Position numbers and translations under genes: made by a program
The notes under the pieces: generated by a model
Seen by the model: the letters and a program-made list of their open reading frames with translations, nothing else
What the model was told of the DNA's origin: nothing
Databases searched by the model: none
Assembly (NCBI GenBank): GCA_002269645.1
Contig: NIVC01002672.1
Coordinates: forward strand, 1-64,000
Origin: Macrostomum lignano
Lineage: Eukaryota
Direction: 5' to 3'
DNA length: 64,000 bases
Shown: in pieces, positions 1 through 34,635 of the stretch
Layout of the letters: the number at the start of each line of letters is the position of its first letter
Numbering within the stretch: the first letter of the stretch is position 1

Positions 1-254
1 TCGGCCTGGGCGGCGCTGGGAAGACGAGGTGAGACTGGCCTAAACGGCTACTCATTTCACTTTGCAGTGGATTGAAAGTTTCAGTGTCTCTAAAATAGAA
101 ACTAATAAATCGGCTTTGGAAATGGAATCTATTGTTACATCCATTGTTCATTGATGAATTGATGAATTGTGACTAATGCACTGCCGTCTATTGAAGCTTG
201 TACGAGTAACTTCACGCGACAGTCAGAGCCTCACGTTTCATGCCCAAATTGGAG

Positions 255-783: not shown

Positions 784-836
784 TCAGAGTCGGTGCTCAA
801 GGATCATAAGCTCCCGCCCCATCCGATCCCCGTCAG

Positions 837-1242
837 TCTCATGCGAGCCCTGATGTCGCCGGACTTCAAGGCGCCGCAAATTCGCCTGGAGGCCATCACG
901 GATGGCATTGACATCAGCACATGGACAATCAACAGGTCAGGCCAGTCCGTCACCTTCAGCGTGTGGGACTTCGCCGGCCAGACGCTGTACTACAACACGC
1001 ACCAGTTCTTCCTGACCGCCCGCGCCGTGTACCTGCTGGTGTGGAACATGCGGCTGGGCTTCGAGCACGCTGGCCTGGACTTCTGGATGAACAGCATCTC
1101 CTGCCACGCTCCCGGCGTGCCAATCTTTGTTGTGGGGACTCACTGCGACAAGGTGGCGAAGTTCGACATGCCAGTGCAGGATCTCAAGGATAAATATCCC
1201 GGAATTGTGGGATTCTTCTCAGTCAGCTCAGCGAGCGGAGAG
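837..1242 (+). CDS. Roco exon encoding most of the ROC GTPase domain (G2-G5)
   Basis: (S)LMRAL...AITDGIDISTW...SVWDFAGQTLYYNTHQFFLT...IFVVGTHCDK...FSVSSASGE. Acceptor ccccgtcag at 836, donor GAG|gtgagc at 1243. Confidence 0.9.
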
Positions 1243-4913: not shown

Positions 4914-4958
<45 letters not shown>

Positions 4959-7900
4959 AACTCTCCTCTGAATCCCTGGAGGCAGCGAGATTGTAATCGG
5001 CTCTTTGATGAAGGCAAATATTTGCGCGGCGGAATTGCAAATGTGCCGCTCGGGTTTCGGGGGGGCAATCGCGGGGTCCGCCGGGAGGGCAGGGGAGCGG
5101 ACAGGCCCAGACAGACGCCCCAGAGCGATAGCTCAGGAGTTCAAAGTCTTTCGAGAGTCGGCGAACGAAAACTGACCTCGGGCAATTAGATAGTTGTGGA
5201 CAAAATACGCGAAATTCGATTATTTCAAATTCGCAACTTAATCCGATTATTAACAGGGAGTTGAGCAGCTGCTCAAGCAGATTCTGGAGACAACACTGAG
5301 CCAGCCATACATTGGCGAGCACGTGCCAGAGGCTTGGCTTAACTTTGAGAAGGCGATTATCAGGTAAGTGGCTAATTGGCGAGTGCTATTTCTGACCGTC
5401 ATGTCCTCGGAATGAAAAGCACACATTTTTCATCCTTCAGCAACCGGAGCTCGAACAGTCTGCTCAAGTGGAGCGAAGTGATGCAGCTTGGCAAGAAGAC
5501 TGGAATTTACGGCGAAGAGGTGCAATTTTATGCTTGCTTGAACTGCGGAATTAGCAGCAGGATTAACAGCAGGATTAACAGCAGGATTAACAGCAGGATT
5601 AACAGCAGGGTTAGCAGCAAGATTAACAGCAGGATTAACAGCAGGATTAACAGCAGGATTAACAGCAGGGTTAGCAGCAAGATTAACAGCAGGATTAACA
5701 GCAGGATTAACAGCCGGATTAGCAGCAGGATTAACAGCAGGGTTAGCAGCAGGACTAACTATGGGATTAACAGTAGGATTAACAGCAGGATTAACAGCAG
5801 GATTAACAGCAGGATTAACAGCAGGACTAACTATGGGATTAACAGTAGGATTAACAGCAGGATTAGCAGCAGGATTAACAGCAGGATTAACAGCAGGATT
5901 AACAGCAGGATTAGCAGCAGGATTAACAGCAAGATTAGTAGCAAGATTAACAGCGGGATTAACAGTAGGATTAACAGCAGGATTAAGAGCAGGACTAACT
6001 GTGCGATTAACAGTAGGATTAACAGCGGGCTTAACAGTAGGATTAGCAGTAGGATGAACAGCAGGATTAACAGCGGGATTTACAGCAGGATTAACTGCGG
6101 GATTAACTGCGGGATTAACAGTGGGATTAACTGCGGGATTAACAGTGGGATTGATAGCGGGATTTACAGCAGGATTAACTGCGGGATTAACTGCGGGATT
6201 TACAGCAGGATTAACTGCGGGATTAACAGTGGGATTGATAGCGGGATTAATTCTTCCAATTCCGGCAGGTGCCGCAAGCTGTGCAGTTTCTTCACGACAT
6301 GGGCAGTCTGCAGCACTTCGACTCTGACTTGCTGTACGACATTGTCATCATCAATCCGCAGTGGCTGGTGGACGTGATGGCCTGCGTTGTCACCGTGCAC
6401 AATCACGTGATCAAGGTAGGCTGGTGCGCGTATCCTCGATGGGGTGGGGGGGGGGAAGATGAGGCCTGCCACAAATCAAGGGGGACAGTAGTCGTTGGCC
6501 ACTGACCACAAAACCGAGTAGCTGTTGAGCCTTGAGCACAAAGTCGAGTAGCTGTTGAGCCTTGAGCACAAAGTCGAGTAGCTGTTGAGCCTTGAGCACA
6601 AGTCGAGTAGTTGTTGACCATTGAGCACAAAATCGAGTAGCTGTTGACCATTGAGCACAAAGTCGAGTAGCTGTTGACCATTGAGCACAAAACCGAGTAG
6701 CTGTTGACCATTGAGCACAAAGTCGAGTAGCTGTTGACCATTGAGCACAAAACCGAGTAGCTGTTGACCATTGAGCACAAAGTCGAGTAGCTGTTGACCA
6801 TTGAGCACAAAACCGAGTAGCTGTTGACCATTGAGCACAAAGTCGAGTAGCTGTTGACCATTGAGCACAAAACCGAGTAGCTGTTGAGCCTTGAGCACAA
6901 AACCGAGTAGCTGTTGTCCATTGAGCACAAAGTCGAGTAGCTGTTGACCATTGAGCACAAAACCGAGTAGCTGTTGACCATTGAGCACAAAGTCGAGTAG
7001 CTGTTGACCATTGAGCACAAAACCGAGTAGCTGTTGAGCCTTGAGCACAAAACCGAGTAGCTGTTGACCATTGAGCACAAAGTCGAGTAGCTGTTGACCA
7101 TTGAGCACAAAACCGAGTAGCTGTTGACCATTGAGCACAAAGTCGAGTAGCTGTTGAGCCTTGAGCACAAAGTCGAGTAGCTGTTGAGCCTTGAGCACAA
7201 AGTCGAGTAGCTGTTAACACTCAATCAGGATGCACAGCAGCCCTGATTTTCTGATGGTCGGGCGTGTTCGTGAATACTGTGAATTTCACGAAAAGCATTT
7301 TGTTCATGGGATCGAACTTCTATAAGTTGGGGCGGTCTTGAGGCACCTGTTCAGCATAGAGGAAATTGAGTCTGGGAGCGGCGACCGTGGGAACAGGAGC
7401 AGCACGGGCTCCCCAACTGGATGACAAACAAACGTCCGGACTTTCTCCTCTCATTTCACTTCCCTCATCCGTGCCCTCCCTGCCTTTTTAGTCCCGTAAG
7501 CGCTTTGGTTTTGGAATTTCAAGCAGCTGGCCTGATGTTGATTCCAGGTTAGACTCAAGGAAGCGGCGCCCTTCTTCCCCCAAGCCTCTTTCTCCTGTCA
7601 TATCCGTCCTCCGGATTTCTGAACTCAGAAGACTGCGTTTGAATTGGCGCGAAATGCGCCACTCCAATCGAATTCTCCAATTCTCTCCCTTATTCAAACA
7701 GTATTGGAATATCAGTGGAGAAAAGTGCGTTTCGCCTTTGGTAACATCTTCCCACTACAGGCGAGGAATGAGCTGGCCCAATCGGGCCAGATGTGCAACC
7801 GACAGCTCAGCCGCAGCTATTGCGCGGCGCATCTGAAAGCTGCATACGGTTGTTCAGTCAAAGGACTGGGGGTTGCCGCACACACCTTATGTAATGCTGG

Positions 7901-10900
7901 CACCCATTTTACAGTTGGGTGAACTGAAGCAATGCAGAGTAAAAGTGTCTTGCTCAAGGACACAAATTGTTCCAATGGGATCGGGAATCGAACCCCCAAC
8001 CTTCTAGTTGCGAGTCCGACGCTCTAACCTCTAGGCTACAGCAATGAGGACATACAAGCGCATCAATGCCTGGCCGGGTACGGGGATCCAACCTACACCT
8101 ACACCTACACCAACCCGCAGGAGGGCCGGTTCAAGCACGAAGACATCCACACTATCTGGAAGGACTACCCGGCCCAGCTGCACGATTGGCTCCTCACCCT
8201 GACGGAGACTTTCGACTTGACTTTCCCGCTCACCGACTCCGGTGTCAGCGTTGTGCCCTGCCTTCTGCCGCAGAAGAAGCCCCAGTTCGATTGGGACGAC
8301 GTCACCGCGCTCGGCGACATCCAGGAGGCCAAGATGAAGTACACCTTCGACTACCTGCCGGCTGGTCTGTTCAACAGGGCCCAGGTGCGACTGTGCCAGT
8401 TCTCCGACGACCTGGTGATCTGGCAGCGGGGATCCCTGCTGTGCAAGGGCGACCACCGGGCCCTCATGGTCAAGAAGGGGTGCGTCTGGGTGCCCAGTAC
8501 CAGCCTGCTGCCTTTTTGTTGCGAGAGAAAAATATCAAAAATATTTTCCCTCATCGCCCGTTTTTCATTTCACAGGGAACGCACAGTGTTAGTGAAGGTG
8601 CAGGGCTCTTCTCCCGAGAACATGCTGATGCTGATACACGAAGTGTTCGAAGGCCTCATCGCCGAGGCGTTCGGCGGGGTCTCCTACGTGTACGAGGTGC
8701 CGTGCATTGACTGTGTCAGACAGGTGAGAGAATGCCGTGGCATGCCGGCACGCTTGGGTTAAACTGATCAACCTGTGTGCTTTTTTAATTTCAGAAAATC
8801 CAAGAGCCGGCCATGTTCAGCAGCCAGGTGCTGCGCAGGGCCATCGAGATGCGGGCCTTGTTTCTCCAGTGCCATTCCATGTTCCACTGCGTGCCGATTC
8901 CCACCCTGCAAGGTACCGGGAGCTGTTTTGCCACTTTTTCTTGTACTATACTGGTTTAAAAATATCCACAAAGTCTAACAAAGCTTTGCTATCAAGCACT
9001 AGTTGCTAGGCGCTGTGCAGTGGGCACAGACGGACTGCATAGGTACAGTCGCGCTTCTATCATGCGACGAACGAAATAACGAAGCAAAGCATCCTAACTG
9101 GAGTTTTCGGTGCATCAAAACTCAAGCAGGTGCAACAAGCAACAGAGCAAATATGCGTAAACACTAATTATCATTCAGTTGCAAAACCGCCCGATCTCTT
9201 GCAATTTGAGCTTTATAGAGGCTCAGCAATGGGGCTGGACAACCGTCAGACACTCAGTCCACAGTGCACACAGAGGCTCAGCAATGGGGCTGGACAACCG
9301 TCAGACAGTCAGTCCACAGTGCACACAGATACTCAGCATTGGGGCTGGACAACCGTCAGACAGTCAGTCCACAGTGCACACAGATACTCAGCATTGGGGC
9401 TGGACAACCGTCAGACACTCAGTCCACAGTGCACACAGAGGGGCTGGACACCCATGAGTGACAGGCAGAAACTTCAGCAGGATTATGCTGACCGTAGGGA
9501 ATAGAAGGCCATAATTGAATAAGGCAAGCAGCTCAGATGCGTCAGTCATGTAGAATAGCCTGGCATCGCTCCACAAAGCGACAGGCACATGGCTCAGCGA
9601 CTATCTAATAACAGTCTGCGGGGCAGCTGGGGGAAACGCACGGGAAAGCCGATCGCCAATTTCAGGAAGCGGCGCAGAGGCGGACTTATGTAGCCAGGCT
9701 TAATGAATAGTAGAAAGTGGGGCGAGGCAAAAACGGTTTAACCTTCTGCCTCGTTGCACGCTAAACTCATTCGCCCTCCTCGCCCTCCTCACTCCCGTCT
9801 CCCAGCTGTGATGCCGCCCGAATCGCCCGCCGACTTTGAGCTGCACTTTGAGCGCTCAGTGAACGACCTGTCAGCGGCCCGGCTGGACCTCGTGCACGAC
9901 GTCACCCTCATCTTCTGCTGCGCCAACAAGAGCGGCGGCGGCGGGGACATCATAGAGAAGATCCAGGCTGGCTTGGAGACTGCCGGCTTATCTGTGTGAG
10001 TATAGCAAGCGGCAGAGTTGAAGAAGCTGCCGGCTTATCTGTGTGAGTATAGCAAGCGGCAGAGTTGAAGATACTGCCGGCTTATCTGTGTGAGTATAGC
10101 AAGCGGGAGAGTTGAAGCTGCCAGCTTATCTGTGTGAGTATAGCAAGCGGCAGAGTTGAAGATACTTCCGGCTTATCTGTGTGAGTATAGCAAGCGGCAG
10201 AGTTGAAGCTGCCAGCTTATCTGTGTGAGTATAGCAAGCGGCAGAGTTGAAGATACTTCCGGCTTATCTGTGTGAGTATAGCAAGCGGCAGAGTTGAAGA
10301 TACTTCCGGCTTATCTGTGTGAGTATAGCAAGCGGCAGAGTTGAAGATACTTCCGGCTTATCTGTGTGAGTATAGCAAGCGGCAGAGTTGAAGATACTTC
10401 CGGCTTATCTGTGTGAGTATAGCAAGCGGCAGAGTTGAAGATACTGCCGGCTTATCTGTGTGAGTATAGCAAGCGGGAGAGTTGAAGCTGCCGGCTTATC
10501 TGTGTGAGTATAGCAAGCGGGAGAGTTGAAGCTGCCGGCTTATCTGTGTGAGTATAGCAAGCGGCAGAGTTGAAGCTGCCAGCTTATCTGTGTGAGTATA
10601 GCAAGCGGGAGAGTTGAAGAGGCTGCCGGCTTATCTGTGTGAGTATAGCAAGCGGCAGAGTTGAAGCTGCCAGCTTATCTGTGTGAGTATAGCAAGCGGG
10701 AGAGTTGAAGAGGCTGCCGGCTTATCTGTGTGAGTATAGCAAGCGGCAGAGTTGAAGCTGCCAGCTTATCTGTGTGAGTATAGCAAGCGGCAGAGTTGAA
10801 GATACTTCCGGCTTATCTGTGTGAGTATAGCAAGCGGCAGAGTTGAAGCTGCCGGCTTATCTGTGTGAGTATAGCAAGCGGCAGAGTTGAAGATACTGCC

Positions 10901-13900
10901 GGCTTATCTGTGTGAGTATAGCAAGCGGCAGAGTTGAAGATACTGCCGGCTTATCTGTGTGAGTATAGCAAGCGGGAGAGTTGAAGCTGCCGGCTTATCT
11001 GTGTGAGTATAGCAAGCGGGAGAGTTGAAGCTGCCGGCTTATCTGTGTGAGTATAGCAAGCGGCAAAGTTGAAGAGGCTGCCGGCTTATCTGTGTGAGTA
11101 TAGCAAGCGGCAAAGTTGAAGAGGCTGCCGGCTTATCTGTGTGAGTATAGCAAGCGGCAAAGTTGAAGAGGCTGCCGGCTTATCTGTGTGAGTATAGCAA
11201 GCGGCAAAGTTGAAGAGGCTGCCGGCTTATCTGTGTGAGTATAGCAAGCGGCAGAGTTGAAGAGGCTGCCGGCTTATCTGTGTGAGTATAGCAAGCGGCA
11301 GAGTTGAAGAGGCTGCCGGCTTATCTGTGTGAGTATAGCAAGCGGCAGAGTTGAAGAGTCTGCAGTCTCTAATGATGCCGATGATGGACTAACCCTGGCC
11401 GGATGCTGAGTGGCCGGGGCCTGAAATAATGAAGCTTGGAGTAGAAGAGATTCAAGGTGCTTCTTTAATCAGTGCTGGGCGTAGCCACCCGTAGCCAGGC
11501 CGCATCCCCGAGACCGGCTATTTTCTGTCGTCAGGATTAAAAGTGAGGCCCCGCATTTTCCAAGCCCGTCAAGACAACCGCGGGAAAATCCGACTCTTTC
11601 GTTAGTCTCTGGCCTCGACTGCTTTTTTAAGTACAAGCTAGTTTACAACAATGCGGTTGGACACCTCAGTGGCAGACTCTTATAGGCATCAAGATAGCGA
11701 CATGGAGCCCGATGCAGCACTAGTGTGCTTTTAGCACCGGTGCTGATTTTGCTTCCCCGCCGCCCCGACACCGAGCAGGCAGTGCGTGTCGGACGAAGCA
11801 ACATCCGAAGAGCGCAGCCTGTCGGACAGCATGGCCCTGCTGCAGCAGTCAGGCTGCTGCCTGTGCCTCATATCCAACGAGTTCGTGCTGTCGGAAACCT
11901 GCGCTCAGTACCTGTCGCTGGCTACTGAGCACCTGAAGAAGCCGCTAGTGCTTGGCCTGGTCGGCAGCGGCAAGGACTGGCAGCAGACAGCGCTGGGCGC
12001 CCGCCTGTCCGGTCTGGTGTACATCAACTTCCAGCGCGAGGCCCAGTTCGACGCCAAGCTGGCCGAGGCGGTGGCCGCCGTCAGGGAGAAGAGCGGCGCC
12101 GGCAAGCGAGAGGTGAGCCGGGCGATTTCAACTGATCACTCGTTGAATTGCCTGCCTGATTTCCTGCAACCATGTGCGAGTGTGTTGTGTTTGCCGCGTC
12201 TGACTCTCTTGTGAATGTTCTTTGCTAAGCATAACTGCAACTCGCCAACTATGAAATGGTGCGTGCAGAAGATTGCCAGCTTTTTTTATGTGTCAGCGCC
12301 AGCTGCCTCAGGCTTGCATGAGCAGCATAGTACTTCGCGGGCAACCGGAATCCCACAAATCCCCCCAATCTCGGGAGAATCCGCCGACCAGACGGCGGAG
12401 ACAGGCGAGCTTAGCGCAGCCTCTCAGACCGATCCTTCAGCTGGGACGAAACAAAAGCGCTCGTAAAATCAGCCATGTTTGTCGGACAGCTCTGGCGCAG
12501 CTGGGGCATCCCTGCTGGCCCGGCAGGCTCTCATTAGCCTTTTAGCGGCAGTAACAAGCCGCTGAGCTTAGCAGAGTTCGGGCGGTTGCGGCTTGGCAGT
12601 CCGGATATGCTCGTATGCGATAGCCTGTAATAAGCGCGAGTAAAAATCTGAGAACGCAGTAAGTCAGGCGTAGGATGAGGATTAACACTGCAGTGTATTC
12701 TTCTGCTGTCGCAGGACAAAGGATCTTCTGTCTTTAATGAGGGAAGCCGACCCTAAAGTCAGGCCTTCTTACCAGAATAGAGCATGGTTGCTGTTTTTTT
12801 AACAGAAAAGACAAAACTTATTGTCAAATGACGCGCGCGGGAAACGACAAATGAGCACAACATATAGTAAAAGTGATCAAATCGCGGTTATCAAACAAGG
12901 GAAATGGGTGAACTAGTAAGAATAATAATCAGTTTCAAAACTTGCAATCAAAGAGGAACGATGCGGACTCGGGAGCTACGCTAGATGAAGCAATCCACTA
13001 TTTATTATTGACAATGATGAGCACAACAAATACAGTTAAGAAATTTGCTTTGATTGTCCAATGCAGGGCAACTCAGACGCCTGCTTTTGCTACAGAAGAT
13101 TCAGTGACTTCAGATTCGGCAAGATTCGGTTCTCCGGCTCGGCTCAGTCAGCACCGCCTGGGTGCCACTTCAGCGGAGCCAGAGCGGCATCCTCTATATG
13201 CGATGGGACAGCGGTGGCCACCGCCGCGGCCTCCGCCCGCCTCAGCGCGTTGGCCTCCCTGCTCAGCATGCTGTAGTTGTTGTTCTGCAGGTGGTTGTTG
13301 TAGTAGTTGTAGTTGTTGCTGCGGCCCTGGCGTCTGTCTGGCAGGTGCAGCATCTGCCTCACCGTCTCCCTGAAGGTGTTGCTGGTGCTGCTGTAGATGA
13401 TGAAGTTGGTGAAGCTGTCCGCGCTCAACAGGATGTTGGCCAAGAAGGTGGTGTGCATGCGGATCTGGTTGAAGCCTCGCATCGAGGCGAAGATGGTCTG
13501 GTTCAGAATGAAGAACAGAAAGGTCGGCAGCTCGCAGATGATGAACGAGAACATCAGAATCATGACGGTCTTGGTCGCCGCGTCCTGGCTGCGGCTGCCG
13601 CTGCCGCTGGCGCCGCCGCCGCCGCCGCGGCCACTGCCGCTTCCAGCGCTGCCGCCGCTGTTCTGCTGCAGCAGTCGGCGCCTGCGCAGGATGAAGATGA
13701 TCACCAGCGACAGGCCGCTGATGAGGAATATCGGGGCGATGGTCTGCAGCGGGAACACCAGCAGAGTTTTGTAGTGCCTGTAGGACGGATTCTTGTCCAG
13801 GATGTGGTGCGTAGCCGTTGTCAGGCTGTAGACGGTTGTCTCGGTTGAGTTGTTCTCAGCCGGGTACTCGCAAATTGTCCAGGTGAACTCAAACAGCCGG

Positions 13901-16900
13901 GGCGCGCACACCAGCAGCGACAGGATGAGCGTCAGGGCGTAGCAGGCCTGGCTGCGCCTGTGGCTGAACAGCTGGCCACGCCGGGTGCTGAACGGGTTGC
14001 TGACCACCTCGCAGCGGCTGCCGGCGATCATCACCAGACTCCAGTTGCGCACCATGATGAAGGCGTTGGCGATGGCGAACGACAGGAAGAACGCGCAGGT
14101 GATCATCTGCGGGTGCAGGGGGCTATCGAAGGCCTGGCGGCCGGCGTCGGCCATCACGGTCAGCATGACGGTGAGGTTGACAGCGAAGCCGATGTTCAGC
14201 ACAGTCTCGGACAGGGACAGCAGCAGCAGCAGGCGGCCCATGATGACATTTTTCTTGTCCAGAATGAACACTATGAGGGAGAAACCGTTGGTCAGGGCGT
14301 TCAGGTAGCTCAGAACGCAAGCGATGTACAAATAGACGTTGGCGGCGCCGCCAGCGGGGCCTTCCGAGCTGCCGGAGTCGTTCAGGCAGCTGCCGTTGAC
14401 AGCCACATAGGCGAGCATCGCTGCTGAGCTGAGCTGATTCTCACTGAACTGAACTGGGAGCTGAGAATCGAACCTGAGTAGTCCGCTGGTTGGCCTTCTC
14501 GGCTCTCCGCCCTGATGGATTTTTCTAGTCCTCCACTTCAGCGAAGCCTCAGCCTCCGCCAATCCGCCCCGGCTCGCTTGTCCTTCACAGCCAATGGCCG
14601 GGCTCCCAGACAACAGCTGCACACTTTAATCTGTCGGATTTGGCAGCGGCTCAAAATCCAGTTTTAAATCCTTTAAAGCTGTTTGAAGTCTCAAGGCTGA
14701 CATCAAACTGTCGTAGTGCTTTTGCAGCTCATCCATAATGCACCACGCACAATAGGTTAATGAAAATGAACGAAGCACTGTACCAAGGCTCTGGGCGGCT
14801 TATGGCTCAGATGGGATTAAGGACTTGAAATTAGGGAATTCGTCCTTTCTGTCTGATTGAATCATACGGTTCTCCTCAGGTCAAAGGGAGCCGCCAACTT
14901 CATGGGAGATTTGCGTCAGCCTGACCGCCTGTTCTGATTCCGCTTTTGCTGCCAAACTTTCTTCGAGCTAATTATAAAAGCATGAGCAGGCTCGACAACA
15001 CTGCTGGATGTACTTTTAAAATATTACTGGCTTATTTTTATAAGCCAGTGTTTTACTAGCAATTGTTATTAAAATCTGCGGGTCAGTGCACCCCCTGGGA
15101 GAGGTGTTTGCCTCCTAATTAATCAGATTCTTATCCGAGCGGTAAGATGCGGATGACGCTGTCGAAATTGCTGGCATAATTGCACTGCTCCGCATCCGTG
15201 CATTTTTGTTGAAGGAAATCCCAAGCCTAGGTGGTAATGAGAGACTTCACGACTTTGGGAATAATAATGTGTGCGCTAATGCCAAAAAAATTGAGTCTTG
15301 ATCCAAACTAACGGCTGAGTTAGGATTCCCTGATCACCTTGTGCATGCCGTTCATTGCAAACGGCATAGTCAATAACACCTTACAGTCCATGCACCTGAC
15401 ACAATGAAGTACGTGACTCGCACAATACCTCACACAGTTCTCAAAATTCATCACACACCTCTCAAAACCCATCGCACAACTCACATCACTCATCACACAC
15501 CTCACGCAACCCATCACACACCTCATACAACCCATCACACCTCATACAACCCATCACACACCTCACACAACCCATCGCACACCTCACACAACCCATCACA
15601 CACCTCACACAACTCATCACACACCTCACACAACCCATCGCACACCTCACACAACTCATCGCACACCTCACACAACCCATCACACACCTCACACAACCCA
15701 TCGCACACCTCACACAACCCATCACACACCTCACACAACCCATCACACACCTCACACAACCCATCGCACACCTCACACAACTCATCACACACCTCACACA
15801 ACCCATCGCACACCTCACACAACTCATCGCACACCTCACACAACCCATCACACACCTCACACAACCCATCGCACACCTCACACAACCCATCGCACACCTC
15901 ACACAACCCATCACACACCTCACACAACCCATCACACACCTCACACAACCCATCGCACACCTCACACAACCCATCACACACCTCATACAACCATCGCACA
16001 CCTCACACAACTCATCGCACACCTCACACAACCCATCACACACCTCACACAACCCATCGCACACCTCACACAACCCATCACACACCTCACACAACCCATC
16101 ACACACCTCATACAACCATCGCACACCTCACACAACTCATCGCACACCTCACACAACCCATCGCACACCTCACACAACCCATCACACACTTCACACAACC
16201 CATCACACACCTCACACAACCCATCACACACCTCACACAACCCATCGCACACCTCATACAACCCATCACACACCTCACACAACCCATCGCACACCTCACA
16301 CAACTCATCGCACACCTCACACAACCCATCACACACCTCACACAACCCATCGCACACCTCACACAACCCATCACACACTTCACACAACCCATCACACACC
16401 TCACACAACCCATCACACACCTCACACAACCCATCGCACACCTCATACAACCCATCACACACCTCACACAACCCATCGCACACCTCACACAACCCATCAC
16501 ACACTTCACACAACCCATCACACACCTCATACAACCCATCACACACCTCACACAACCCATCACACACCTCACACAACCCATCGCACACCTCATACAACCC
16601 ATCACACACCTCACACAACCCATCACACACCTCACACAACCCATCACACACCTCACACAACCCATCACACACCTCACACAACCCATCACACACCTCACAC
16701 AACCCATCACACACCTCACACAACCCATCACACACCTCACACAACCCATCACACACCTCACACAACCCATCACACACCTCACACAACCCATCACACACCT
16801 CACACAACCCATCACACACCTCACCCGCAGCGGGTCAGCGGGCGCGCAGACGTGTTCATCAGCTACTGCTGGGCGAACTCGCAGGAGGCGGTCAAGGCAG

Positions 16901-19900
16901 GCCACGGCAAGGCCACCAGCCGCTCCATCGGGTTCGGCGATCCCCGGAAACTCAAGAAGCACCTGGAGGAAGCCGGCGGCCTTTCCTGCTGGATTGACAT
17001 CGAACGGCTGGGCGAGAACGGCATGTTTGAGGACCTCTGCCAGGGACTCAAGGCCTGCAAGCTGGTGGTGGCCTGCCTCTCCGATGAGGTGAGAACTGAT
17101 CGCGACTGGGCATTAGAATGCGTGCTATTGATTACGAGCGTATTATTCAACTCTAAATATTTGCAGCTCACTGTGAATCTCTAGAGCTCACTGTGAATCT
17201 CTGCAGCTCACTGTGAATCTCTGCAGCTCACTGTGAATCTCTGCAGCTCACTGTGAATCTCTGCAGCTCACTGTGAATCTCTGCAGCTCACTGTGAATCT
17301 CTGCAGATCACTGTGAATCTCTGCAGCTCACCGTGACACTGTGCAGCTCACTGTGAATATCTGCAGCTCACTGTGAATCTCTGCAGCTCACTGTGAATCT
17401 CTGCAGCTCACTTTGAATTTATGCAGCCCCAATTAGCGCAAAAAATATCGCTTGCAAAATCATCCGCAATGCTTTCTGAAGCTAAAAGTAAAAAAAATTT
17501 TCCCCAATCGCAGTACGTGGCATCGAAGAACTGCCAGATGGAGTATCGCTTTGCTCACCTGACGCTCAACCGGCCCATGGTGATCTGCGTTGTGGGCACC
17601 GGCGTGCTGTGGGAGTCCACTGAGGTGAGCGGGGGCGACTGCGGAGTCTGGGGGGGGGGCAGTTGGAACTCGAACGGGAGATAAGGAATGGGAACTGAGG
17701 TATGAGATGAGAGCAGAGATGAAGTGAGAAACTTAGCTGAGAGGAGAAATGACATGAAGGTAGAAACAGGTGAGAGTAAAATGAGATGAAAAGCGGAGGA
17801 AACAGGTGAGAGTAAAATGAGATGAAAAGCGGAGGAAACAGGTGAGAGTGAAATGAGATGAAGGGAGAACAGGTGAGAGTGAAATAAGATGAAGGGAGGA
17901 ACATGTAAGAGTGAAATTAGATGAAGGGAGGAACATGTAAGAGTGAAATTAGATGAAGGGAGGAACATGTAAGAGTGAAATTAGATGAAGGGAGGAGGAA
18001 CAGGTGAGAGTGAAATGAGAAGGGAGGAACAGGTGAGAGGAGAAATGAGAAGGGAGGAACAGGTGAGGGGAACAGGTGAGAGGAGAAATGAGAAGGGAGA
18101 AACAGGTGAGAGGAGAAATGAGAAGGGAGAAACAGGTGAGAGGAGAAATGAGAAGGGAGAAACAGGTGAGAGGAGAAATGAGAAGGGAGAAACAGGTGAG
18201 AGGAGAAGTGAGAAGGGAGGAACAGGTGAGAGGAACAGGTGAGAGGAACAGGTGAGAGGAGAAATGAGAAGGGAGGAACAGGTGAGAGGAGAAATGAGAA
18301 GGGAGGAACAGGTGAGAGGAACAGGTGAGAGGAACAGGTGAGAGGAGAAATGAGAAGGGAGGAACAGGTGAGAGGAACAGGTGAGAGGAGAAATGAGAAG
18401 GGAGGAACAGGTGAGAGGAGAAATGAGAAGGGAGGAACAGGTGAGAGGAGAAATGAGAAGGGAGGAACAGGTGAGAGGAGAAATGAGAAGGGAGGAACAG
18501 GTGAGAGGAGAAATGAGAAGGGAGGAACAGGTGAGAGGAGAAATGAGAAGGGAGGAACAGGTGAGAGGAGAAATGAGAAGGGAGGAGCCAGTGAAAAGTG
18601 AAAGGAGTGAGAGAAAGGTGAAATAAGATACAAAGTGGCTGGAAAGGAGGAAAGCGGAAATCGATTCCCAGGACAGTGGAAACGATGAAGCGGGGTTTTC
18701 ACTCAGTCCCAGTTCAGGTGGCCCTGCAGTGGGGTCTCGGCCCAGCTTAGCATAAATCTTCTTTCAGCGCATCGCAGCCCGGCAGCCACCCACACGCAAG
18801 CAGCCGGACTGCTTTTGGCTTTGGTCTTGACCCTTATGTGAAATTTTTCCTTAACATGAGATTCGATGCACTTTAATTCGAATCCGCTGTTTCATGTTTT
18901 TTATAAATTCTGAAAGCAGTCGCAGATAAATAAACTAAAGAATTTGAAACCTGGTGAGATTGGTACCTAATCTAGAGATATTGATATCTAGTCTAGTGAG
19001 ATTAGCATCTAGTCTAGTGAGATTGGCATCTAGTCTAGTGAGATTAGCATCTAGTCTAGTGAGATTAGCATCTAGTCTGGTGAGATTGGCATCTAGTCTA
19101 GTGAGATTAGCATCTAGTCTAGTGAGATCTAGTCTAGTGAGATTGGCATCTAGTCTAGTGAGACTGGTATCTAGTCTAGTGATATTGGCATCTAGTCTAG
19201 TGAGATTAGCCTCTATTCTAGTGAGATTGGCATCTAGTCTAGTGAGATTAGCCTCTATTCTAGTGAGATTGGCATCTAGTCTAGTGAGAAGATTGGTATC
19301 TAAACTAGTGAGATTGGTATCTAGTCCAGTGAGATTGGTATCTAGTCTAGTGAGATTGGTATCTAGTCCAGTGAGATTGGCATCTAGTCTAGTGAGATTA
19401 GCATCGAGTCTAGTAAGATCGGTATCTAGTCTAGTGAGATCGGTATCTAGTCTAGTGAGATCGGTATCTATCTAGTGAGATTGGTATCTAGTCTAGTGAG
19501 ATTGGTATCTAGTCTAGTAAGATTGGTATCTAGTCTAGTGAGATTGGTATCTAGTCTAGTGAGATTGGCATCTAGTCTAGTGAGATTGGTATCTATCTAG
19601 TGAGATTGGTATCTAGTCTAGTGAGATTGGTATCTAGTCTAGTGAGATTATGGTATCTATCTAGTGAGATTGGTATCTAGTCTAGTGAGATTGGTATCTA
19701 GTCTAGTGAGATCGGTATCTATCTAGTGAAATTGGTGAAATTGGTATCTATCTAGTGAGATCGGTATCTAGTCTAGTGAGATTGGTATCTAGTCTAGTGA
19801 GATTATGGTATCTATCTAGTGAGATTATGGTATCTATCTAGTGAGATTGGTATCTAGTCTAGTGAGATTGGTATCTAGTCTAGTAAGATTGGTATCTAGT

Positions 19901-21924
19901 CTAGTGAGATTGGTATCTAGTCTAGTGAGATTGGCATCTAGTCTAGTGAGATTGGTATCTAGTCTAGTGAGATTGGTATCTAGTCTAGTAAGATTATGGT
20001 TAAAAGCATGTAATTCATTGAGAAAAGCATCTAATCTAGTGAGAAAAGCATCTAATCTACCGAACCGAACAACCCCGGCAGATCGGCATGATGTCGCTCG
20101 GTCATCCAAAGGTGAACTTCCAAGCTGCCAGCGAATCCTGCTACGACGCTCTGCTGAGCGCGGTGACGGAGACGCTGGAGAGGTACTACCCCATCAAACG
20201 GCCGGACAGCAAGGACAGTCTCCGCAAGCGGCGCAAAAGCAGCCTGAGCAGTCCGGGCGGAGGTGGCGCCATGTTCCAGGTGATGCATTTTCTCTTGACT
20301 GGTTACCTATCTAGTACGAGATAATGATGGAGAGATAATGATTTTCTGGAGGGCTAGGGGCGCCCTGACGCAGCTTCGGTGACAACTGTCACAGTACATG
20401 AGCACACAAGCGCGTCAATGTTGTACGCAGACACGCACTCATGCACACTGGGTGCACAGCGGCTCCTGACTGAAAACCGGCATGATATCCGAAAAACTAC
20501 TTAAAGTAGAAAGTAAATAAATAACTGTTATTTTTTCTGTTCCTAATTGGAAAACTGTCAAACATGGCTACAGGAACTGATCGAGCTCGCCCAGCGCAAA
20601 GTCTACCGCCAGTTCTCCGGATTTCTCGACACGGCCGAGCAGTTTCCCTGCCTCATCGTGGCCGACATCTATACTGACTCTGTGAGTAGGCTCTGCCATT
20701 TCCCAGTCTACCATTTCCCAGTCTACCATTTCCCAGTCTACCATTTCCCAGTCTACCATTTCCCAGTCTACCATTTCCCAGTCTACCATTTCCCAGTCTA
20801 CCATTTCCCAGTCTACCATTTCCCAGTCTACCATTTCCCAGTCTACCATTTCCCAGTCTACCATTTCCCAGTCTACCATTTCCCAGTCTACCATTTCCCA
20901 GTCTACCATTTCCCAGTCTACCATTTCCCAATCTACCGTTTTAGTCTGCCTGACAAGCTCTCCATCAATTTCCCAACCAATCATCCCTGTCGTCTCGGCC
21001 ACTCCGCAGGACAACCCGGCCGACAGCCCGGACAAGACCGAGTTCTCCGCCGTGGCCGCCTTCGCCGACGACGCGGCCGCGGACGAGCCGCCGCTGTCTG
21101 ACGACGGCGTCGAAGACGAGCCCCGCTTCCAGTTCCGGTTCCGCCTGCTCTGCGAGCACGAGGGCGGCTGGCATGCGGCCCCAGGCGCCGGCCTGCCGCT
21201 CCGCCTCGGCCGGGACGCCGCCCTGCAGCTGCTGGGAGGCCTGGCGCCGCTGCTGCTCCGCCTGGCGCTGGTCCTCCGGCACAGCCGGCGCTCCGGCCTG
21301 GACACCGCGGCCGACCCCGTGGCCGGCGGCCGCCTGCTCGATCACTTGCGCGCGGCAGCTGAGCGCGCCGGGCCCGAGGCCGACCTGCGTCAGCTGCACG
21401 CGGCGCTGCGCCAGCACCTGCGCCGCCGGGACCCGGGCATCGCTGCCGGCCTACGCCGCTGCCACCTGCCGTCAGGAAAAATCCTCTGGCTGTGCCCGGA
21501 GCACCAGAGCCAGCCGAGGACCGTCGTGCTGGCGGACGCCGCCACGGCCGTCCCTGCTGCTGACGCTGGTGACACTGCGGAGGACGAGGAGGAGGAGCTG
21601 CTGGCGCAGGTGTTGTCGGTGGTCGGCAGCGGCGCCGTCGCGTCTGTCGCTGCTGAATCGGCGGCTGCCGAGGCGGCCGAGCAGTCCAGCTCCAAGCGCA
21701 AGCTGGCCGTCGCTGGCCTCGGCCGCATCGACGAAGCCGTCGAGTCGCCCGAGCCGTCGGCCTCGGCTGCGTCCTCCGCTGCGGCGGCGGCGGCTGCGAC
21801 GGCGGCGACACCCGTGAAGGATGCGCGGCAAGGCAGAGTGGGCAGCCCCCCGAGCGTAAGGAAGCGGCCGTTCAGCGCGCCGGCCGGGCAGGGCCAGAAG
21901 AGCCGCGCCTGCCAGCTGCTGTGA
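837..21924 (+). CDS. Roco-family protein (ROC GTPase-COR-TIR-TIR-C-terminal domain-CaaX), 5'-partial, multi-exon
   Basis: Hand-spliced phase-consistent GT-AG exons: 837-1242, 5257-5363, 5441-5519, 6269-6415, 8121-8479, 8576-8723, 8795-8912, 9806-9995, 11779-12112, (possible 12297-12404), 16831-17088, 17514-17624, 20082-20279, 20574-20681, 21010-21924 (TGA). ROC motifs TDGIDI, FSVWDFAGQ..YYNTHQFFL and VVGTHCDK are present. The P-loop and any LRRs lie upstream of the window. Confidence 0.88.
1350..1803. repeat. 23-bp minisatellite (GGGAGGTCAGATTGTCCTGTACT)
   Basis: Direct tandem units. Confidence 0.95.
3310..3810. repeat. Degenerate purine-rich ~20-bp tandem repeat (GATTAGAGAGAGATTAGATG)
   Basis: Imperfect tandem units. 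Confidence 0.85.
5257..8912 (+). CDS. Roco exons encoding the COR domain
   Basis: Exons 5257-5363 (YIGEHVPEAWL), 5441-5519, 6269-6415 (AVQFLHDMGSLQHF...IINPQWL), 8121-8479 (VPCLLP...YTFDYLPAGLFNR...IWQRG), 8576-8723 (PCIDC), 8795-8912. These are typical COR-A/COR-B motifs. Confidence 0.88.
5546..6250. repeat. 12-bp minisatellite (GGATTAACAGCA) filling a Roco intron
   Basis: Direct tandem units; it occupies nearly all of intron 5520-6268. Confidence 0.95.
6503..7215. repeat. 30-bp minisatellite (AGTCGAGTAGCTGTTGACCATTGAGCACAA)
   Basis: About 24 near-identical units with alternating AGTC/AACC variants. Confidence 0.95.
7795..8039 (-). mobile_element. tRNA-derived SINE with CORE-like central domain, copy 1
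   Basis: The minus strand has an A-box (TAGCCTAGAGG), a B-box (GGTTCGATTCC), then TGTGTCCTTGAGCAAGACACTT..CTTCAGTTCACCCAACTGTAAAATGGG. A highly similar copy lies at 46833-47082. Confidence 0.8.
9222..9450. repeat. 55-bp minisatellite (about 4 copies)
   Basis: GGGGCTGGACAACCGTCAGACAGTCAGTCCACAGTGCACACAGATACTCAGCATT units. Confidence 0.92.
9806..12112 (+). CDS. Roco exons encoding degenerate TIR domain 1
   Basis: Exons 9806-9995 and 11779-12112: DVTLIFC...LETAGLSV...CCLCLISNEFVLSETCAQYLSLA...KKPLVLGLVG...DWQQTALG...YINF. TIR_2-like pattern. Confidence 0.75.
9980..11358. repeat. 44-48-bp minisatellite containing the exon end and 5' splice site (CTGCCGGCTTATCTGT|GTGAGTATAGCAAGCGGCAGAGTTGAAG..)
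   Basis: About 30 units; the first unit overlaps the last 16 coding nt of exon 9806-9995. Confidence 0.95.
13144..14418 (-). CDS. Intronless class A (rhodopsin-like) GPCR, peptide/FMRFamide-receptor-like, nested antisense in a Roco intron
   Basis: Single ORF with seven hydrophobic segments: TM3 SRC in place of DRY (AGSRCEVVSNPF), TM4-ECL2 APRLFEF, TM6 SFIICELP, TM7 NFIIY. N-glycosylation sites near the N-terminus. Likely start MLAYVAVNGS at 14418; the ORF is open further upstream to 14622. Confidence 0.9.
   Translation of the reverse strand: MLAYVAVNGSCLNDSGSSEGPAGGAANVYLYIACVLSYLNALTNGFSLIVFILDKKNVIMGRLLLLLSLSETVLNIGFAVNLTVMLTVMADAGRQAFDSPLHPQMITCAFFLSFAIANAFIMVRNWSLVMIAGSRCEVVSNPFSTRRGQLFSHRRSQACYALTLILSLLVCAPRLFEFTWTICEYPAENNSTETTVYSLTTATHHILDKNPSYRHYKTLLVFPLQTIAPIFLISGLSLVIIFILRRRRLLQQNSGGSAGSGSGRGGGGGASGSGSRSQDAATKTVMILMFSFIICELPTFLFFILNQTIFASMRGFNQIRMHTTFLANILLSADSFTNFIIYSSTSNTFRETVRQMLHLPDRRQGRSNNYNYYNNHLQNNNYSMLSREANALRRAEAAAVATAVPSHIEDAALAPLKWHPGGAD
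15470..16824. repeat. 21-bp CA-rich minisatellite (CACACCTCACACAACCCATCA)
   Basis: About 64 units; it ends a few nt before acceptor AG at 16829-16830. Confidence 0.95.
16831..20279 (+). CDS. Roco exons encoding TIR domain 2
   Basis: Exons 16831-17088, 17514-17624, 20082-20279: DVFISYCW...LSCWIDIE...LCQGLKACKLVVACLSDEYVASKNCQMEYRFA...PMVICVVG...WESTEIG. Confidence 0.88.
17161..17415. repeat. 20-bp minisatellite (GCAGCTCACTGTGAATCTCT)
   Basis: Direct tandem units. Confidence 0.95.
17715..18590. repeat. Purine-rich ~30-bp minisatellite (GAGAAGGGAGGAACAGGTGAGAGGAGAAAT)
   Basis: Direct tandem units with 12-bp sub-units. Confidence 0.92.
18954..20055. repeat. 21-bp minisatellite (GTGAGATTGGTATCTAGTCTA)
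   Basis: Direct tandem units; it ends about 25 nt before acceptor 20081. Confidence 0.95.
20574..21924 (+). CDS. Roco last two exons: C-terminal domain (LCEHEGGWH...GLRRCHLPSGKILWLCPEH), low-complexity tail and CaaX box CQLL
   Basis: Exons 20574-20681 and 21010-21924 are in phase 0, and the ORF track 21052-21924 agrees. Confidence 0.8.
20696..20938. repeat. 15-bp minisatellite (CCATTTCCCAGTCTA) x ~16
   Basis: Near-perfect units starting 14 nt after donor 20682. Confidence 0.95.

Positions 21925-24263: not shown

Positions 24264-34635
<10,372 letters not shown>

Follow-up and report, generated by a model that had tools for sequence, protein, structure and literature searches.

LRRK2, LRRK1, MFHAS1 and the bacterial protein CtRoco (Chlorobium tepidum Roco) carry a Roc-COR tandem after LRRs. 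In CtRoco, the best-studied bacterial Roco protein, GTP binding causes monomerisation and opening, not dimerisation (PMC11052575). Prokaryotic proteins in which LRRs, an AP-GTPase (Roc) and COR precede variable C-terminal effectors, including TIR domains, have been interpreted as conflict systems (PMC8195603; Kaur, Burroughs, Iyer, and Aravind 2021). Among animals, an Aplysia immunome study listed ROCO and TIR proteins with MBT or EF-hand domains and proposed a "novel GTPase TLR signalling cascade" (PMC9334734), and a Trichoplax survey classed two ~3000-aa LRR and TIR proteins as "ecTIR-DC 14 II," without mention of Roc/COR (PMC6321704). A survey of TIR domains did not find the main Toll-like receptor (TLR) TIR group in flatworms (PMC7075850), and a 2026 TIR enzymology preprint sampled TIR2 orthologues of the ROCO-TIR family. 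The surveys list domains only, and the literature searched yielded no functionally characterised ROCO-TIR member. Here, we describe a gene of the flatworm Macrostomum lignano that, judged from its sequence, is a member of this large, widespread and already catalogued invertebrate family.

The window analysed, 64,000 nucleotides, is the start of contig NIVC01002672.1. The gene occupies positions 3-21924 of the + strand; its 15 exons, with GT-AG borders throughout, join in phase at canonical sites with no stop codon inside, encode 1167 residues and end in a TGA stop codon (21922-21924). A preliminary description, made from the letters alone, had read exons at 837-21924 as encoding ROC-COR, TIR1, TIR2 and a domain marked by CEHxxGWH/WLCPEH. 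All of these elements are present in that order, and 14 exons rebuilt there from splice sites and reading phases have consistent phases, an AG...GT border in every case and exactly the quoted C-terminus, ...RKRPFSAPAGQGQKSRACQLL (last residues KSRACQLL before the stop). One exon fragment had been overlooked, at 3-28, which holds the P-loop and splices to 837. All 1158 residues of the 14-exon model are identical (100%) to PAA56038.1 (GenBank, Macrostomum lignano, hypothetical, partial; BOX15_Mlig008185g1), whose gene call spans contig positions 3-21924. The gene extends past the 5' contig end, and its LRR/EF-hand N-terminus is absent from the window; LRRs and an EF-hand-like segment appear solely in P0001, an M. 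lignano copy with 99% identity, which was seen together with two diverged family members. UniProt includes fragmentary models: P0001 ends within TIR2, and P0122 is a 189-residue piece. The product runs Roc, COR-A, COR-B, TIR1, TIR2, a ~200-residue Cys/His C-terminal domain (CTD), a disordered tail and a CaaX box. The Pfam search suggested in the preliminary description places every family above its curated cut-off: COR-A at 109 bits (cut-off 35.3), COR-B at 96.7 (27), Roc at 55.2 (27) and TIR_2, in two stretches, at 72.8 (28). The features, all on the + strand, are as follows.

3..28, +: exon fragment at the contig/window edge, Roc G1 P-loop GLGGAGKT(S); matches the first 9 residues of PAA56038.1, gene called from contig position 3
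837, +: completes the Ser codon split after the P-loop (splicing 28 to 837)
837..1242, +: Roc GTPase exon with switch I and G5 SSA (Pfam Roc and Ras; splice borders)
967-981, +: G3 DFAGQ (residue coordinates, Roc exon)
1138-1149, +: G4 THCD (residue coordinates, Roc exon)
5257..5363, +: COR-A exon 1 (splice borders, Pfam)
5441..5519, +: COR-A exon 2 (splice borders, Pfam)
6269..6415, +: COR-A exon 3 (Pfam COR-A; borders)
8121..8479, +: COR-A end and COR-B start (Pfam COR-B; borders)
8576..8723, +: COR-B exon (splice borders, Pfam)
8795..8912, +: COR-B end (splice borders, Pfam)
9806..9995, +: linker and first part of TIR1, with first strand and first helix by alignment position (borders; alignment; Lineus homologue tandem-TIR model)
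11779..12112, +: remainder of TIR1 (Pfam TIR_2; alignments)
11909-11911, +: Tyr571, at the catalytic-Glu position of TIR1 (alignments)
16831..17088, +: TIR2 exon 1, FISYCW...GDPR...CWIDIE...VVACLSDE (Pfam TIR_2; borders; invariant columns)
17514..17624, +: TIR2 exon 2 (borders; alignments)
17541-17543, +: Glu734, invariant catalytic-position Glu of TIR2, in NCQMEYR (alignments)
20082..20279, +: TIR2 end, with last strand and last helix by alignment position, and basic Ser-rich linker (borders; alignment; tandem model)
20574..20681, +: CTD exon 1, helix ELIELAQRK..., strand FPCLIVAD (borders; alignment; AF2 model)
21010..21540, +: acidic insert and CTD core (alignments; AF2 model, pLDDT 83; profile search)
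21151-21153, +: CTD Cys911 (alignments)
21172-21174, +: CTD His918 (alignments)
21493-21495, +: CTD Cys1025 (alignments)
21502-21504, +: CTD His1028 (alignments)
21541..21909, +: Ala/Ser/Glu-rich low-complexity tail, ~125 residues (sequence composition)
21910..21924, +: CaaX box CQLL (Cys1164) and stop TGA (borders; conservation; Rap1B box)

The introns are long and minisatellite-rich, and an antisense GPCR gene is nested inside the 4.7-kb intron separating TIR1 from TIR2.

Nemerteans, molluscs, brachiopods, annelids, rotifers, hemichordates, amphioxus, Trichoplax and Thecamonas all have collinear homologues, as does a nematode (from a partial model). With dozens of homologues in many phyla repeating the same order, it is not a product of chance; in one of them, on a 4.1-kb Logan contig, 1224 codons form a single unbroken ORF free of introns. 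These results bear on whether the gene is an annotation artefact, either a pseudogene or a model that takes its TIR exons or last CaaX exon from another gene. The minisatellite-filled introns, the nested GPCR gene and the fragmentary UniProt models would fit such an origin, but the in-phase exons with canonical sites, the identical GenBank model, the Roc-COR-TIR-TIR-CTD-CaaX order across phyla and the intron-free ORF bring it close to refuted, and we regard it as highly improbable. Names of family members in databases are automatic (PATS1-like, roco5, LRRK2 or MFHAS1), or the entries are partial models. We take "ecTIR-DC 14" of Gerdol et al. 2017 to be, probably, the same family, and we infer that the Trichoplax "ecTIR-DC 14 II" proteins belong to it. 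The architecture had at first gone unrecognised, with a search across phyla proposed and many well-characterised orthologues named as what would count against it; it proves to be that of a widespread family present in immune-gene surveys (PMC9334734), with Roc-COR-TIR-CTD found also in a metagenomic protein, and the orthologues are many but none is characterised.

The CaaX ending reported earlier is real, and its sequence, CQLL, also ends Rap1B, for which modification by GGTase-I is documented (PMC7958859). Of 54 homologues from Spiralia, a hemichordate and amphioxus whose tail continues for 60 residues or more past the CTD, 46 end in S-[KRQ]-[AT]-C-a-a-X, whereas among 127 proteins with nothing after the CTD, mostly prokaryote-type or metagenomic with a few truncated animal models, 1 has a CaaX box. 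Rotifer-type homologues have no CaaX box, and the final residue is M, Q or S in most homologues and L in the M. lignano gene. Since the box is kept family-wide, a conservation of which we found no description in the literature searched, lipidation of the protein is very likely. The last 25 residues of the tail include five K/R and no acidic residues; one prenyl group in such weakly basic surroundings may give transient or endomembrane binding, not stable plasma-membrane binding. No conserved transmembrane-like segment was found.

The two TIR domains differ at the catalytic column. In an alignment spanning many phyla, Glu occupies it in 21/21 TIR2 domains and in none of the TIR1 domains, where the residue is hydrophobic or aromatic. 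Of the 22 columns that are invariant across the tandem, 21 fall within TIR2. TIR1 is predicted to be non-catalytic. The preprint table agrees for Capitella (Met in R7TDS1_1, Glu in R7TDS1_2), and we found no description of this constant pattern in the literature searched. Four residues before the TIR2 Glu stands Asn, Ser or Thr, never an aromatic residue; the position holds Trp in SARM1, AbTir and TLR4 and Tyr in BdTIR. An AF2 model of the tandem from a Lineus homologue gives five-strand TIR folds for both domains (pLDDT 86), with no confident TIR1-TIR2 packing (pTM 0.54). The closest PDB folds are SARM1 (the best Foldseek match), RPP1, Hydra TRR-2, MyD88, RUN1 and AbTir. In Table S4 of the preprint, which covers a screen run in E. 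coli, the "Active" column is blank for the TIR2 domains of Rotaria sp. A0A818LFL5 and Dimorphilus A0A7I8VYT1, each expressed alone, and because these two orthologous domains were inactive, NADase activity of TIR2 is tentative.

It is possible, if doubtful, that the protein is instead a non-enzymatic membrane adaptor, a prenylated, GTPase-regulated scaffold recruiting partners by TIR-TIR contacts like TIRAP/Mal and MyD88, without NAD+ chemistry. The inactive lone orthologues, the missing Trp, predicted folds equally close to enzymatic TIRs and to those of MyD88, MAL and Hydra TRR-2, and the cascade suggested from Aplysia (PMC9334734) all accord with such a scaffold. However, the Glu is retained throughout TIR2, whereas the preprint lists Tyr, Ala, Ala and Ser at this position in human TLR6, TLR7, TLR8 and TLR9; prokaryote-type relatives of the same layout have a TIR at the effector position (PMC8195603; P0145); and the family is kept in a flatworm. 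A pure TLR adaptor role is disfavoured because the main TLR TIR group was not found in flatworms (PMC7075850).

Roc retains G1 GLGGAGKT, G3 DFAGQ, G4 THCD and, read by eye, a G5-like SSA. The best solved sequence match of Roc-COR is LRRK2 (E 3e-28), and LRRK2, LRRK1 and CtRoco are its closest solved relatives. The earlier wording of a "dimerisation-controlled" GTPase needs care because GTP drives CtRoco to the monomer (PMC11052575).

The CTD, the domain marked by CEHxxGWH/WLCPEH, has neither a Pfam family nor a PDB fold match, and its AF2 model is confident (pLDDT 83, pTM 0.78). In alignments P, C, H and C are invariant and the second H is near-invariant (Cys in Thecamonas). A profile search returned 2082 cluster representatives, nearly all with the CTD placed after Roc-COR; it also terminates bacterial LRR-Roc-COR proteins, an arrangement verified on an Amycolatopsis chromosome. 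The profile did not match the ~150 residues at the CtRoco C-terminus, whose structure is unknown, although the 1107-residue chain 8r4b was in the PDB set. No description of the CTD, or of its occurrence in bacterial LRR-Roc-COR proteins, was found in the literature searched.

We lean modestly toward a prenyl-tethered, GTPase-gated TIR signalling switch whose favoured output is NAD+ processing by TIR2 upon assembly. The 1167 residues encoded at the locus would be the C-terminal part of a cytosolic signalling protein with many domains, built in the full family order: N-terminal region, LRRs with EF-hand, Roc, COR-A/B, TIR1, TIR2, CTD, disordered tail and CaaX. First, as motif and conservation suggest, Cys1164 of CQLL would be geranylgeranylated and processed, leaving a ~125-residue flexible tether to the membrane. 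Second, the LRR/Roc/COR core, whose domains and motifs are evident, would change conformation with the bound nucleotide and so act as a switch, like its counterparts in bacterial Roco proteins and LRRK2. Third, this switch would set the assembly state of the tandem, with TIR1 as non-catalytic partner and TIR2 as output, the latter because it is far better conserved than TIR1 and carries the invariant Glu734. Fourth, TIR2 may process NAD+ only once assembled with TIR1 or other copies, which we favour with modest confidence. Fifth, the Cys-His-Cys-His of the CTD would form a structural metal site, probably for Zn, and the CTD, common to bacterial LRR-Roc-COR proteins, probably regulates or oligomerises the protein. 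Most plausibly, it is an autonomous intracellular sensor-effector in innate defence or cell death, not a TLR accessory.

The first three steps are compatible with a non-immune role, which differs in biological process alone: a part in membrane traffic, in the upkeep of neurons or axons or in signalling that depends on Ca2+, all suggested for LRRK2 and MFHAS1, with the TIRs serving NAD+ homeostasis or SARM1-like self-destruction instead of pathogen defence. The nearest solved Roc-COR structures, the EF-hand between LRR blocks of homologues (PMC9334734), SARM1 as top Foldseek match, and a conserved, apparently low-copy family, unlike the lineage-specific expansions typical of receptors, are in keeping with this role, yet same-layout bacterial relatives are assigned to conflict systems (PMC8195603) and the pairing of TIR with LRR is typical of immune proteins; we judge a non-immune role unlikely.

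The proteins nearest to the M. lignano product are other invertebrate ROCO-TIR proteins, which match it from end to end (37-47% identity, E values as low as 0), such as Aplysia LOC101848126 and LOC101845043, Capitella R7TDS1, Trichoplax B3S268 and Branchiostoma A0A8J9W0R3 (auto-named MFHAS1). They have in common LRR/EF-hand, Roc, COR, TIR1 (no Glu), TIR2 (Glu), CTD, tail and CaaX, and vary in accessory N-terminal domains (MBT, PLAT, SPRY-like, TPR). The M. lignano gene also shares its CTD and overall layout with bacterial Roc-COR proteins: prokaryotic LRR-Roc-COR proteins, including actinobacterial ones, have the same core and the same CTD residues (P, C, H and C invariant, H near-invariant), and metagenomic P0145 (Roc-COR-TIR-CTD), from a compact same-strand gene arrangement, likewise places its TIR between COR and CTD. 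P0145 has one TIR with a canonical W-x3-E motif, whereas the M. lignano protein has two TIRs; bacterial proteins end straight after the CTD, without tail or CaaX, and their CTD has an additional conserved Cys (HCPSVF) where animal proteins have YPRLF. In contrast to LRRK2, LRRK1 and MFHAS1, the M. lignano protein lacks kinase, WD40 and death domains, the TIR tandem being the putative output, and it would attach to membranes through its own CaaX box, whereas LRRK2-type proteins are recruited by Rabs. SARM1, AbTir and plant TNL TIRs share with TIR2 the fold and catalytic-column Glu, and in SARM1-type proteins, as would be the case here, a regulatory module on the same polypeptide controls the TIR; however, TIR2 lacks the Trp, two orthologues expressed alone were inactive, no SAM/ARM octamer is present, and SARM1 has no counterpart of the Glu-less and Glu-bearing tandem. 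Rap1B is a GTPase with an identical C-terminal CaaX, and the immune guanylate-binding proteins GBP1, GBP2 and GBP5 carry CaaX boxes. Like the GBPs, ROCO-TIR proteins are large, GTPase-containing, prenyl-anchored by motif and possibly defence-linked, but the likeness to Rap1B and the GBPs lies in the anchoring device, with homology only in the G domain, and in the M. lignano protein ~1100 residues separate the G domain from the lipid site, with which the disordered tail closes.

The window is animal DNA in which exons are short and introns are long and crowded with minisatellites, and it contains a gene of the ROCO-TIR family, invertebrate proteins that combine LRR and EF-hand segments, Roc, COR, two TIR domains (TIR1 and TIR2), a Cys/His C-terminal domain (CTD), a tail, and a CaaX box. 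We set exon borders on the + strand by combining open frames with AG/GT sites and reading phase, which gave 14 exons within 837-21924, all in phase and every border AG...GT, ending in a TGA stop codon (21922-21924). The spliced product ends ...RKRPFSAPAGQGQKSRACQLL*, identical to the ending quoted in the preliminary description of this sequence. The gene already has a GenBank entry (BOX15_Mlig008185g1; PAA56038.1, hypothetical protein, partial, 1167 aa, contig 3-21924), which is 100% identical to the rebuilt model over 1158 residues. Its nine additional residues, GLGGAGKTS, form the Roc P-loop and come from an exon fragment at 3-28; the exons within 837-21924 hold, but this fragment had been overlooked. 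Because it sits at the very start of the window, the gene runs off the contig. Everything upstream of the P-loop (LRRs, EF-hand, and N-terminal region) is absent from the assembly contig, and the LRRs and EF-hand-like segment can be seen only in orthologues and in a 99%-identical M. lignano copy (P0001; P numbers denote collected homologues).

Repeats and other open reading frames in the window
282-776, minisatellite array
1351-1803, minisatellite array
5550-6250, minisatellite array
6487-7215, minisatellite array
9973-11363, 47-nt tandem repeat of about 30 copies, beginning within exon 8
13144-14622, - strand, intact 492-codon ORF of a rhodopsin-type GPCR
15449-16824, minisatellite array
17162-17427, minisatellite array
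17716-18586, minisatellite array
18954-19995, minisatellite array
20692-20941, minisatellite array
21976-22971, minisatellite array
24331-27051, - strand, 906-codon ORF
27734-28435, - strand, 233-codon lectin-like ORF
33457-33894, + strand, ORF with a hAT-family transposase C-terminal dimerization domain
56918-60467, + strand, three consecutive long ORFs (367, 416, and 288 codons)

Minisatellite arrays (periods of 12-91 nt, up to 87 copies) fill most introns of the gene and the region just 3' of it, and several produce long spurious ORFs on both strands. Each 47-nt unit copies the last ~17 bases of exon 8 plus its GTGAGT splice donor, so that the intron holds about 30 cryptic donor copies. The GPCR ORF (Pfam 7tm_1 and Srw) is nested antisense within the 4.7-kb intron separating the TIR1 and TIR2 exons. 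Downstream, the 906-codon ORF encodes three internal repeats with abundant Cys and N-x-S/T sites, carries a mucin-like PPDTTS repeat at its C-terminus, and has no Pfam match; its product may be a secreted or surface glycoprotein. It adjoins, on the same strand, the 233-codon ORF, which weakly matches a C-type lectin domain (Pfam Lectin_C, E 5.7e-6). The hAT ORF (E 4.9e-11) is probably a transposon remnant, and the three consecutive ORFs, which have hydrophobic stretches and no Pfam match, may represent exons of a single membrane protein gene.

Searching 5.8 billion proteins recovered homologues that are full length and collinear and share 37-47% identity, from Lineus, many molluscs, Lingula, Capitella, Dimorphilus, rotifers, the nematode Plectus (partial model), the hemichordate Glandiceps, Branchiostoma, Trichoplax, and the apusozoan Thecamonas, under automatically assigned names (uncharacterized, PATS1-like, roco5, LRRK2, and MFHAS1). 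In Aplysia, an immunome study lists TIR proteins that carry ROC/COR together with MBT or EF-hand domains, and its authors speculate about a TLR cascade linked to a GTPase (PMC9334734). Kamm et al. (2019) describe two Trichoplax LRR and TIR proteins of ~3000 residues as the "ecTIR-DC 14 II" of Gerdol et al. (2017) (PMC6321704); we infer that these belong to the ROCO-TIR family. The architecture, which the preliminary description did not recognize as characterized, is thus real and conserved, already recorded in surveys, and functionally uncharacterized. The window gene is an annotated, ordinary member of this known family and therefore not the oddity it was taken for; what had been observed in the sequence stands, and the interpretation placed on it is supported in part.

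Two further sequences touch on the family record. A short, transcript-like Logan contig (L040, SRR5451715, 4094 nt) carries an uninterrupted ORF of 1224 codons (205-3879) that encodes Roc-COR-TIR-TIR-CTD-CaaX and ends ...KSQACVLQ; no LRR family is among its Pfam matches, and it may represent a short isoform or an incomplete contig. A 189-residue M. lignano fragment (P0122, UniProt A0A1I8J1W7) spans the end of TIR2 and the first half of the CTD. Its UniRef name, "DNA_mis_repair domain-containing protein," looks wrong, since a Pfam scan finds no such domain in it.

In the spliced product, Roc is followed directly by COR in one polypeptide, which places the protein among the ROCO proteins. Pfam scores are 55.2 bits for Roc (cut-off 27), 109.1 for COR-A (35.3), and 96.7 for COR-B (27), and the best PDB sequence matches are LRRK2, M. 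barkeri Roco2, and CtRoco. The nucleotide-binding motifs are intact, the last of them only G5-like and read by eye, and the protein is a predicted GTP binder.

Nucleotide-binding motifs of Roc
3-28, + strand, G1 motif GLGGAGKT
967-981, + strand, G3 motif DFAGQ
1138-1149, + strand, G4 motif THCD
within Roc, + strand, G5-like SSA, read by eye in the translation

Two stretches of the product match Pfam TIR_2 above the curated cut-off (72.8 bits). An AlphaFold2 model of the tandem from a Lineus homologue (pLDDT 86) has two well-formed TIR folds of five strands each, with a mutual orientation of TIR1 and TIR2 that is not confident (pTM 0.54). Foldseek matches it to the TIRs of SARM1, MyD88, RUN1, and AbTir with probability 1.00, and RPP1, Hydra TRR-2, and MAL are likewise found. 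Since enzymatic and adaptor TIRs are retrieved alike, the fold does not separate enzyme from adaptor. At the position of the third-helix Glu of reference TIRs (SARM1 E642, AbTir E208, BdTIR E127, and TLR4 E750), every one of 21 aligned sequences has Glu in TIR2 (Glu734 in the window gene); TIR1 lacks this Glu in every sequence, with Tyr571 in the window gene and L, M, I, or Q in homologues. The same asymmetry agrees with a preprint's structural assignment of the Capitella pair, Met in R7TDS1_1 and Glu in R7TDS1_2 (bioRxiv 10.64898/2026.04.20.719644). Of 22 invariant columns in the tandem alignment, 21 lie within TIR2. The preliminary proposal of a TIR NADase therefore finds its Glu in TIR2, but not in TIR1, and TIR2 itself has no aromatic residue four positions ahead of that Glu (Glu-4), where SARM1, AbTir, and TLR4 have Trp (W-x3-E) and BdTIR has Tyr. 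Its motif is S-K-N-C-Q-M-E, and nearly all homologues have N, S, or T at the Glu-4 position (one has Ala and one Met).

TIR enzymes, including SARM1, plant TIR receptors, and AbTir, need assembly. A serious rival reading, in which the TIRs are adaptors without enzymatic output, draws on the residues at Glu-4 and on a screen in which the TIR2 orthologues of Rotaria sp. (A0A818LFL5) and Dimorphilus (A0A7I8VYT1), each expressed in E. coli as an isolated domain, have nothing entered under "Active" (Table S4, bioRxiv 10.64898/2026.04.20.719644). Because isolated domains were used, those blanks are not decisive, and an adaptor role sits poorly with a TIR2 Glu that is invariant across phyla and with prokaryote-type relatives whose effector position is occupied by a canonical W-x3-E TIR. 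For these two reasons, we lean toward TIR2 as a putative Glu734-dependent enzymatic output that would require assembly.

The CTD, ~200 residues after TIR2 that contain LLCEHEGGWH and WLCPEH, has no Pfam match. A phmmer scan matched it to the C-terminal ends of prokaryote-type LRR-Roc-COR proteins as well. An indexed protein search with the CTD alignment returned 2 matches, and we suspect that acidic low-complexity inserts swamped the word index; an exhaustive HMM search of 1.84 billion cluster representatives, used instead, matched 2082 proteins at E<=1e-3, 913 of them at E<=1e-10, in nearly every case at the extreme C-terminus, with Roc-COR upstream in all 11 long matches scanned. A bacterial genome scan with a 4-sequence alignment, which reaches an actinobacterial subfamily only, located the domain in cultured actinomycetes (Actinophytocola, Kibdelosporangium, Amycolatopsis, Rhodococcus rhodnii, and Streptomyces smaragdinus); a 1497-residue LRR-Roc-COR protein encoded on the chromosome of Amycolatopsis sp. 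WGS_07 terminates in it. A metagenomic protein of 945 aa (P0145), the gene for which starts 15 nt after the preceding same-strand gene, reads Roc-COR-TIR-CTD, the order of the window gene with a single TIR. The CTD terminates many bacterial Roco proteins and defines a large domain family (~2000 cluster representatives) with no Pfam family, solved structure, or PDB sequence relative. Within the PDB set, the CTD profile gave no match to full-length CtRoco (8r4b, 1107 aa), in which ~150 C-terminal residues are without known structure (PMC11052575).

We modeled the CTD from Lineus P0002, the closest complete homologue (38% identical in the CTD), and the AlphaFold2 model is confident (pLDDT 83, pTM 0.78), with no fold match in the PDB by Foldseek (best E 0.58, TM below 0.2). 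Across 24 aligned sequences, one Pro, Cys911, His918, and Cys1025 are invariant, and His1028 is nearly so, being Cys in Thecamonas. The resulting C-x6-H ... C-x2-H pattern falls on a hairpin and at the beginning of a helix and tolerates a His-to-Cys swap, which suggests a structural metal site. A weak profile match to the palm/His-box region of USP21 (E 0.045; domain E 2.2) raised a Cys/His protease as an alternative; we rejected it as chance because it has no fold support and because the Cys that replaces the last His in Thecamonas would suit a metal ligand better than a catalytic residue. In animal homologues, the ~215 N-terminal residues before the LRRs have invariant P, P, C-x6-H, and C-x2-H with the spacing of the CTD (P0004, P0005, P0006, P0008, P0011, P0016, P0021, P0023, and P0026), and family members may carry a copy of one domain type at either end; HMM matches between the two regions are weak, and a profile-profile comparison with hhalign was not significant (probability 1.2%).

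Beyond the CTD, a tail of 125 residues, rich in Ala, Ser, and Glu and basic just before its end, closes with C-Q-L-L and the stop codon, placing Cys fourth from the end with an aliphatic a2 residue. Nearly all complete homologues have a terminal CaaX preceded by S-[KRQ]-[AT]; ends include ...SKACVIL and ...SQICTIS in Lineus, ...SKACVII in Glandiceps, ...SKACSLM in Patella and Branchiostoma, and ...SQACLIL in Capitella. Among 201 collected proteins with a complete CTD, a C-x-x-x end occurs in 46 of the 54 with tails of at least 60 residues and in only 1 of the 127 that stop right after the CTD, a group dominated by prokaryote-type or metagenomic proteins that also includes a few truncated animal models. 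The last CaaX residue usually selects the prenyltransferase. It is M, Q, or S in 31 proteins and L in 12, including the window gene, and by this rule most homologues would be farnesylated and a minority, with the window gene, geranylgeranylated. Rap1B, a studied GGTase-I substrate, has the same CQLL box (PMC7958859), and the CaaX box named in the preliminary description is borne out as a predicted substrate. Nothing relevant turned up when the literature was searched for a prenylated Roco or TIR protein, and we found no paper mentioning CaaX in this family. Rotifer-type members, comprising named Brachionus models and similar sequences (P0232, P0233, P0236, P0239, P0246, P0252, P0255, P0257, P0028, P0031, and P0050), stop 25-40 residues after the CTD with ...ELKKYD-like ends and without CaaX; judged from these ends, the lineage appears to have lost the lipid anchor. 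The conserved box offers a simple handle on where the ROCO-TIR protein works.

The domain order, intact GTPase motifs, asymmetric TIR pair, conserved CaaX, and bacterial-type CTD allow a mechanism to be proposed. Cys1164 would be geranylgeranylated and would tether the protein to a membrane via its long flexible tail, and LRR-Roc-COR would form a nucleotide-dependent conformational switch. GTP causes CtRoco to open and monomerize (PMC11052575), so that the "dimerization-controlled" GTPase of the preliminary description should not be equated with a GTP-bound dimer. The switch would govern assembly of the TIR module, with TIR2 as the output and TIR1 as a noncatalytic partner, and the CTD may regulate or oligomerize the protein. 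A TIR survey did not find the main Toll-like receptor TIR group in flatworms (PMC7075850), which favors an autonomous sensor-effector over a Toll-like receptor accessory. A more far-reaching proposal, which we consider rather unlikely, is that the protein is an animal relative of a bacterial Roco-TIR defense protein that is now membrane anchored: a prenyl-tethered, GTP-gated switch in which the Glu-less TIR1 would activate the Glu-bearing TIR2, yielding an NAD+-derived signal or NAD+ depletion at the membrane, with the CTD as an undescribed metal-binding fold coupling Roc-COR to its effector in bacteria and animals alike.

RNAi and transgenesis are feasible in M. lignano, which makes these questions testable there; the conserved CaaX, the predicted pairing of inactive and active TIRs, and the Cys/His domain common to bacteria are the points worth following. 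Catalytic TIR signaling in animals beyond SARM1 is the wider question on which the family bears.

Set against known systems, the protein differs from LRRK- and DAPK-type animal Roco kinases, which carry a kinase in the same polypeptide. No Pkinase match was found in the 1158-residue product at E<=1 or in the scanned full-length homologues at E<=0.01, no death domain was found, and the "non-specific serine/threonine protein kinase" labels on homologues originate in source databases. Some surveys reportedly labeled these proteins as Toll-like receptors, which have an LRR ectodomain, one transmembrane helix, and a single C-terminal TIR. Here, the homologues' LRRs lie directly N-terminal to a cytosolic GTPase, neither of the two TIRs is C-terminal, and no conserved transmembrane-like segment was found, the top 19-residue hydropathy peaks lying within COR-A, the TIR2 core, or a CTD helix. 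The layout is that of prokaryotic LRR-AP-GTPase(Roc)-COR proteins, in which the C-terminal effector varies and can be a TIR (Kaur et al. 2021, PMC8195603), and the CTD is common to bacterial members. This match is one of layout resemblance and homology; the host is an animal, and a conflict-system role is putative. By joining an LRRK2-type GTPase switch to a TIR output in an arrangement also found in bacterial conflict-system proteins, the ROCO-TIR family provides a natural system for Roc-COR control of a non-kinase effector.
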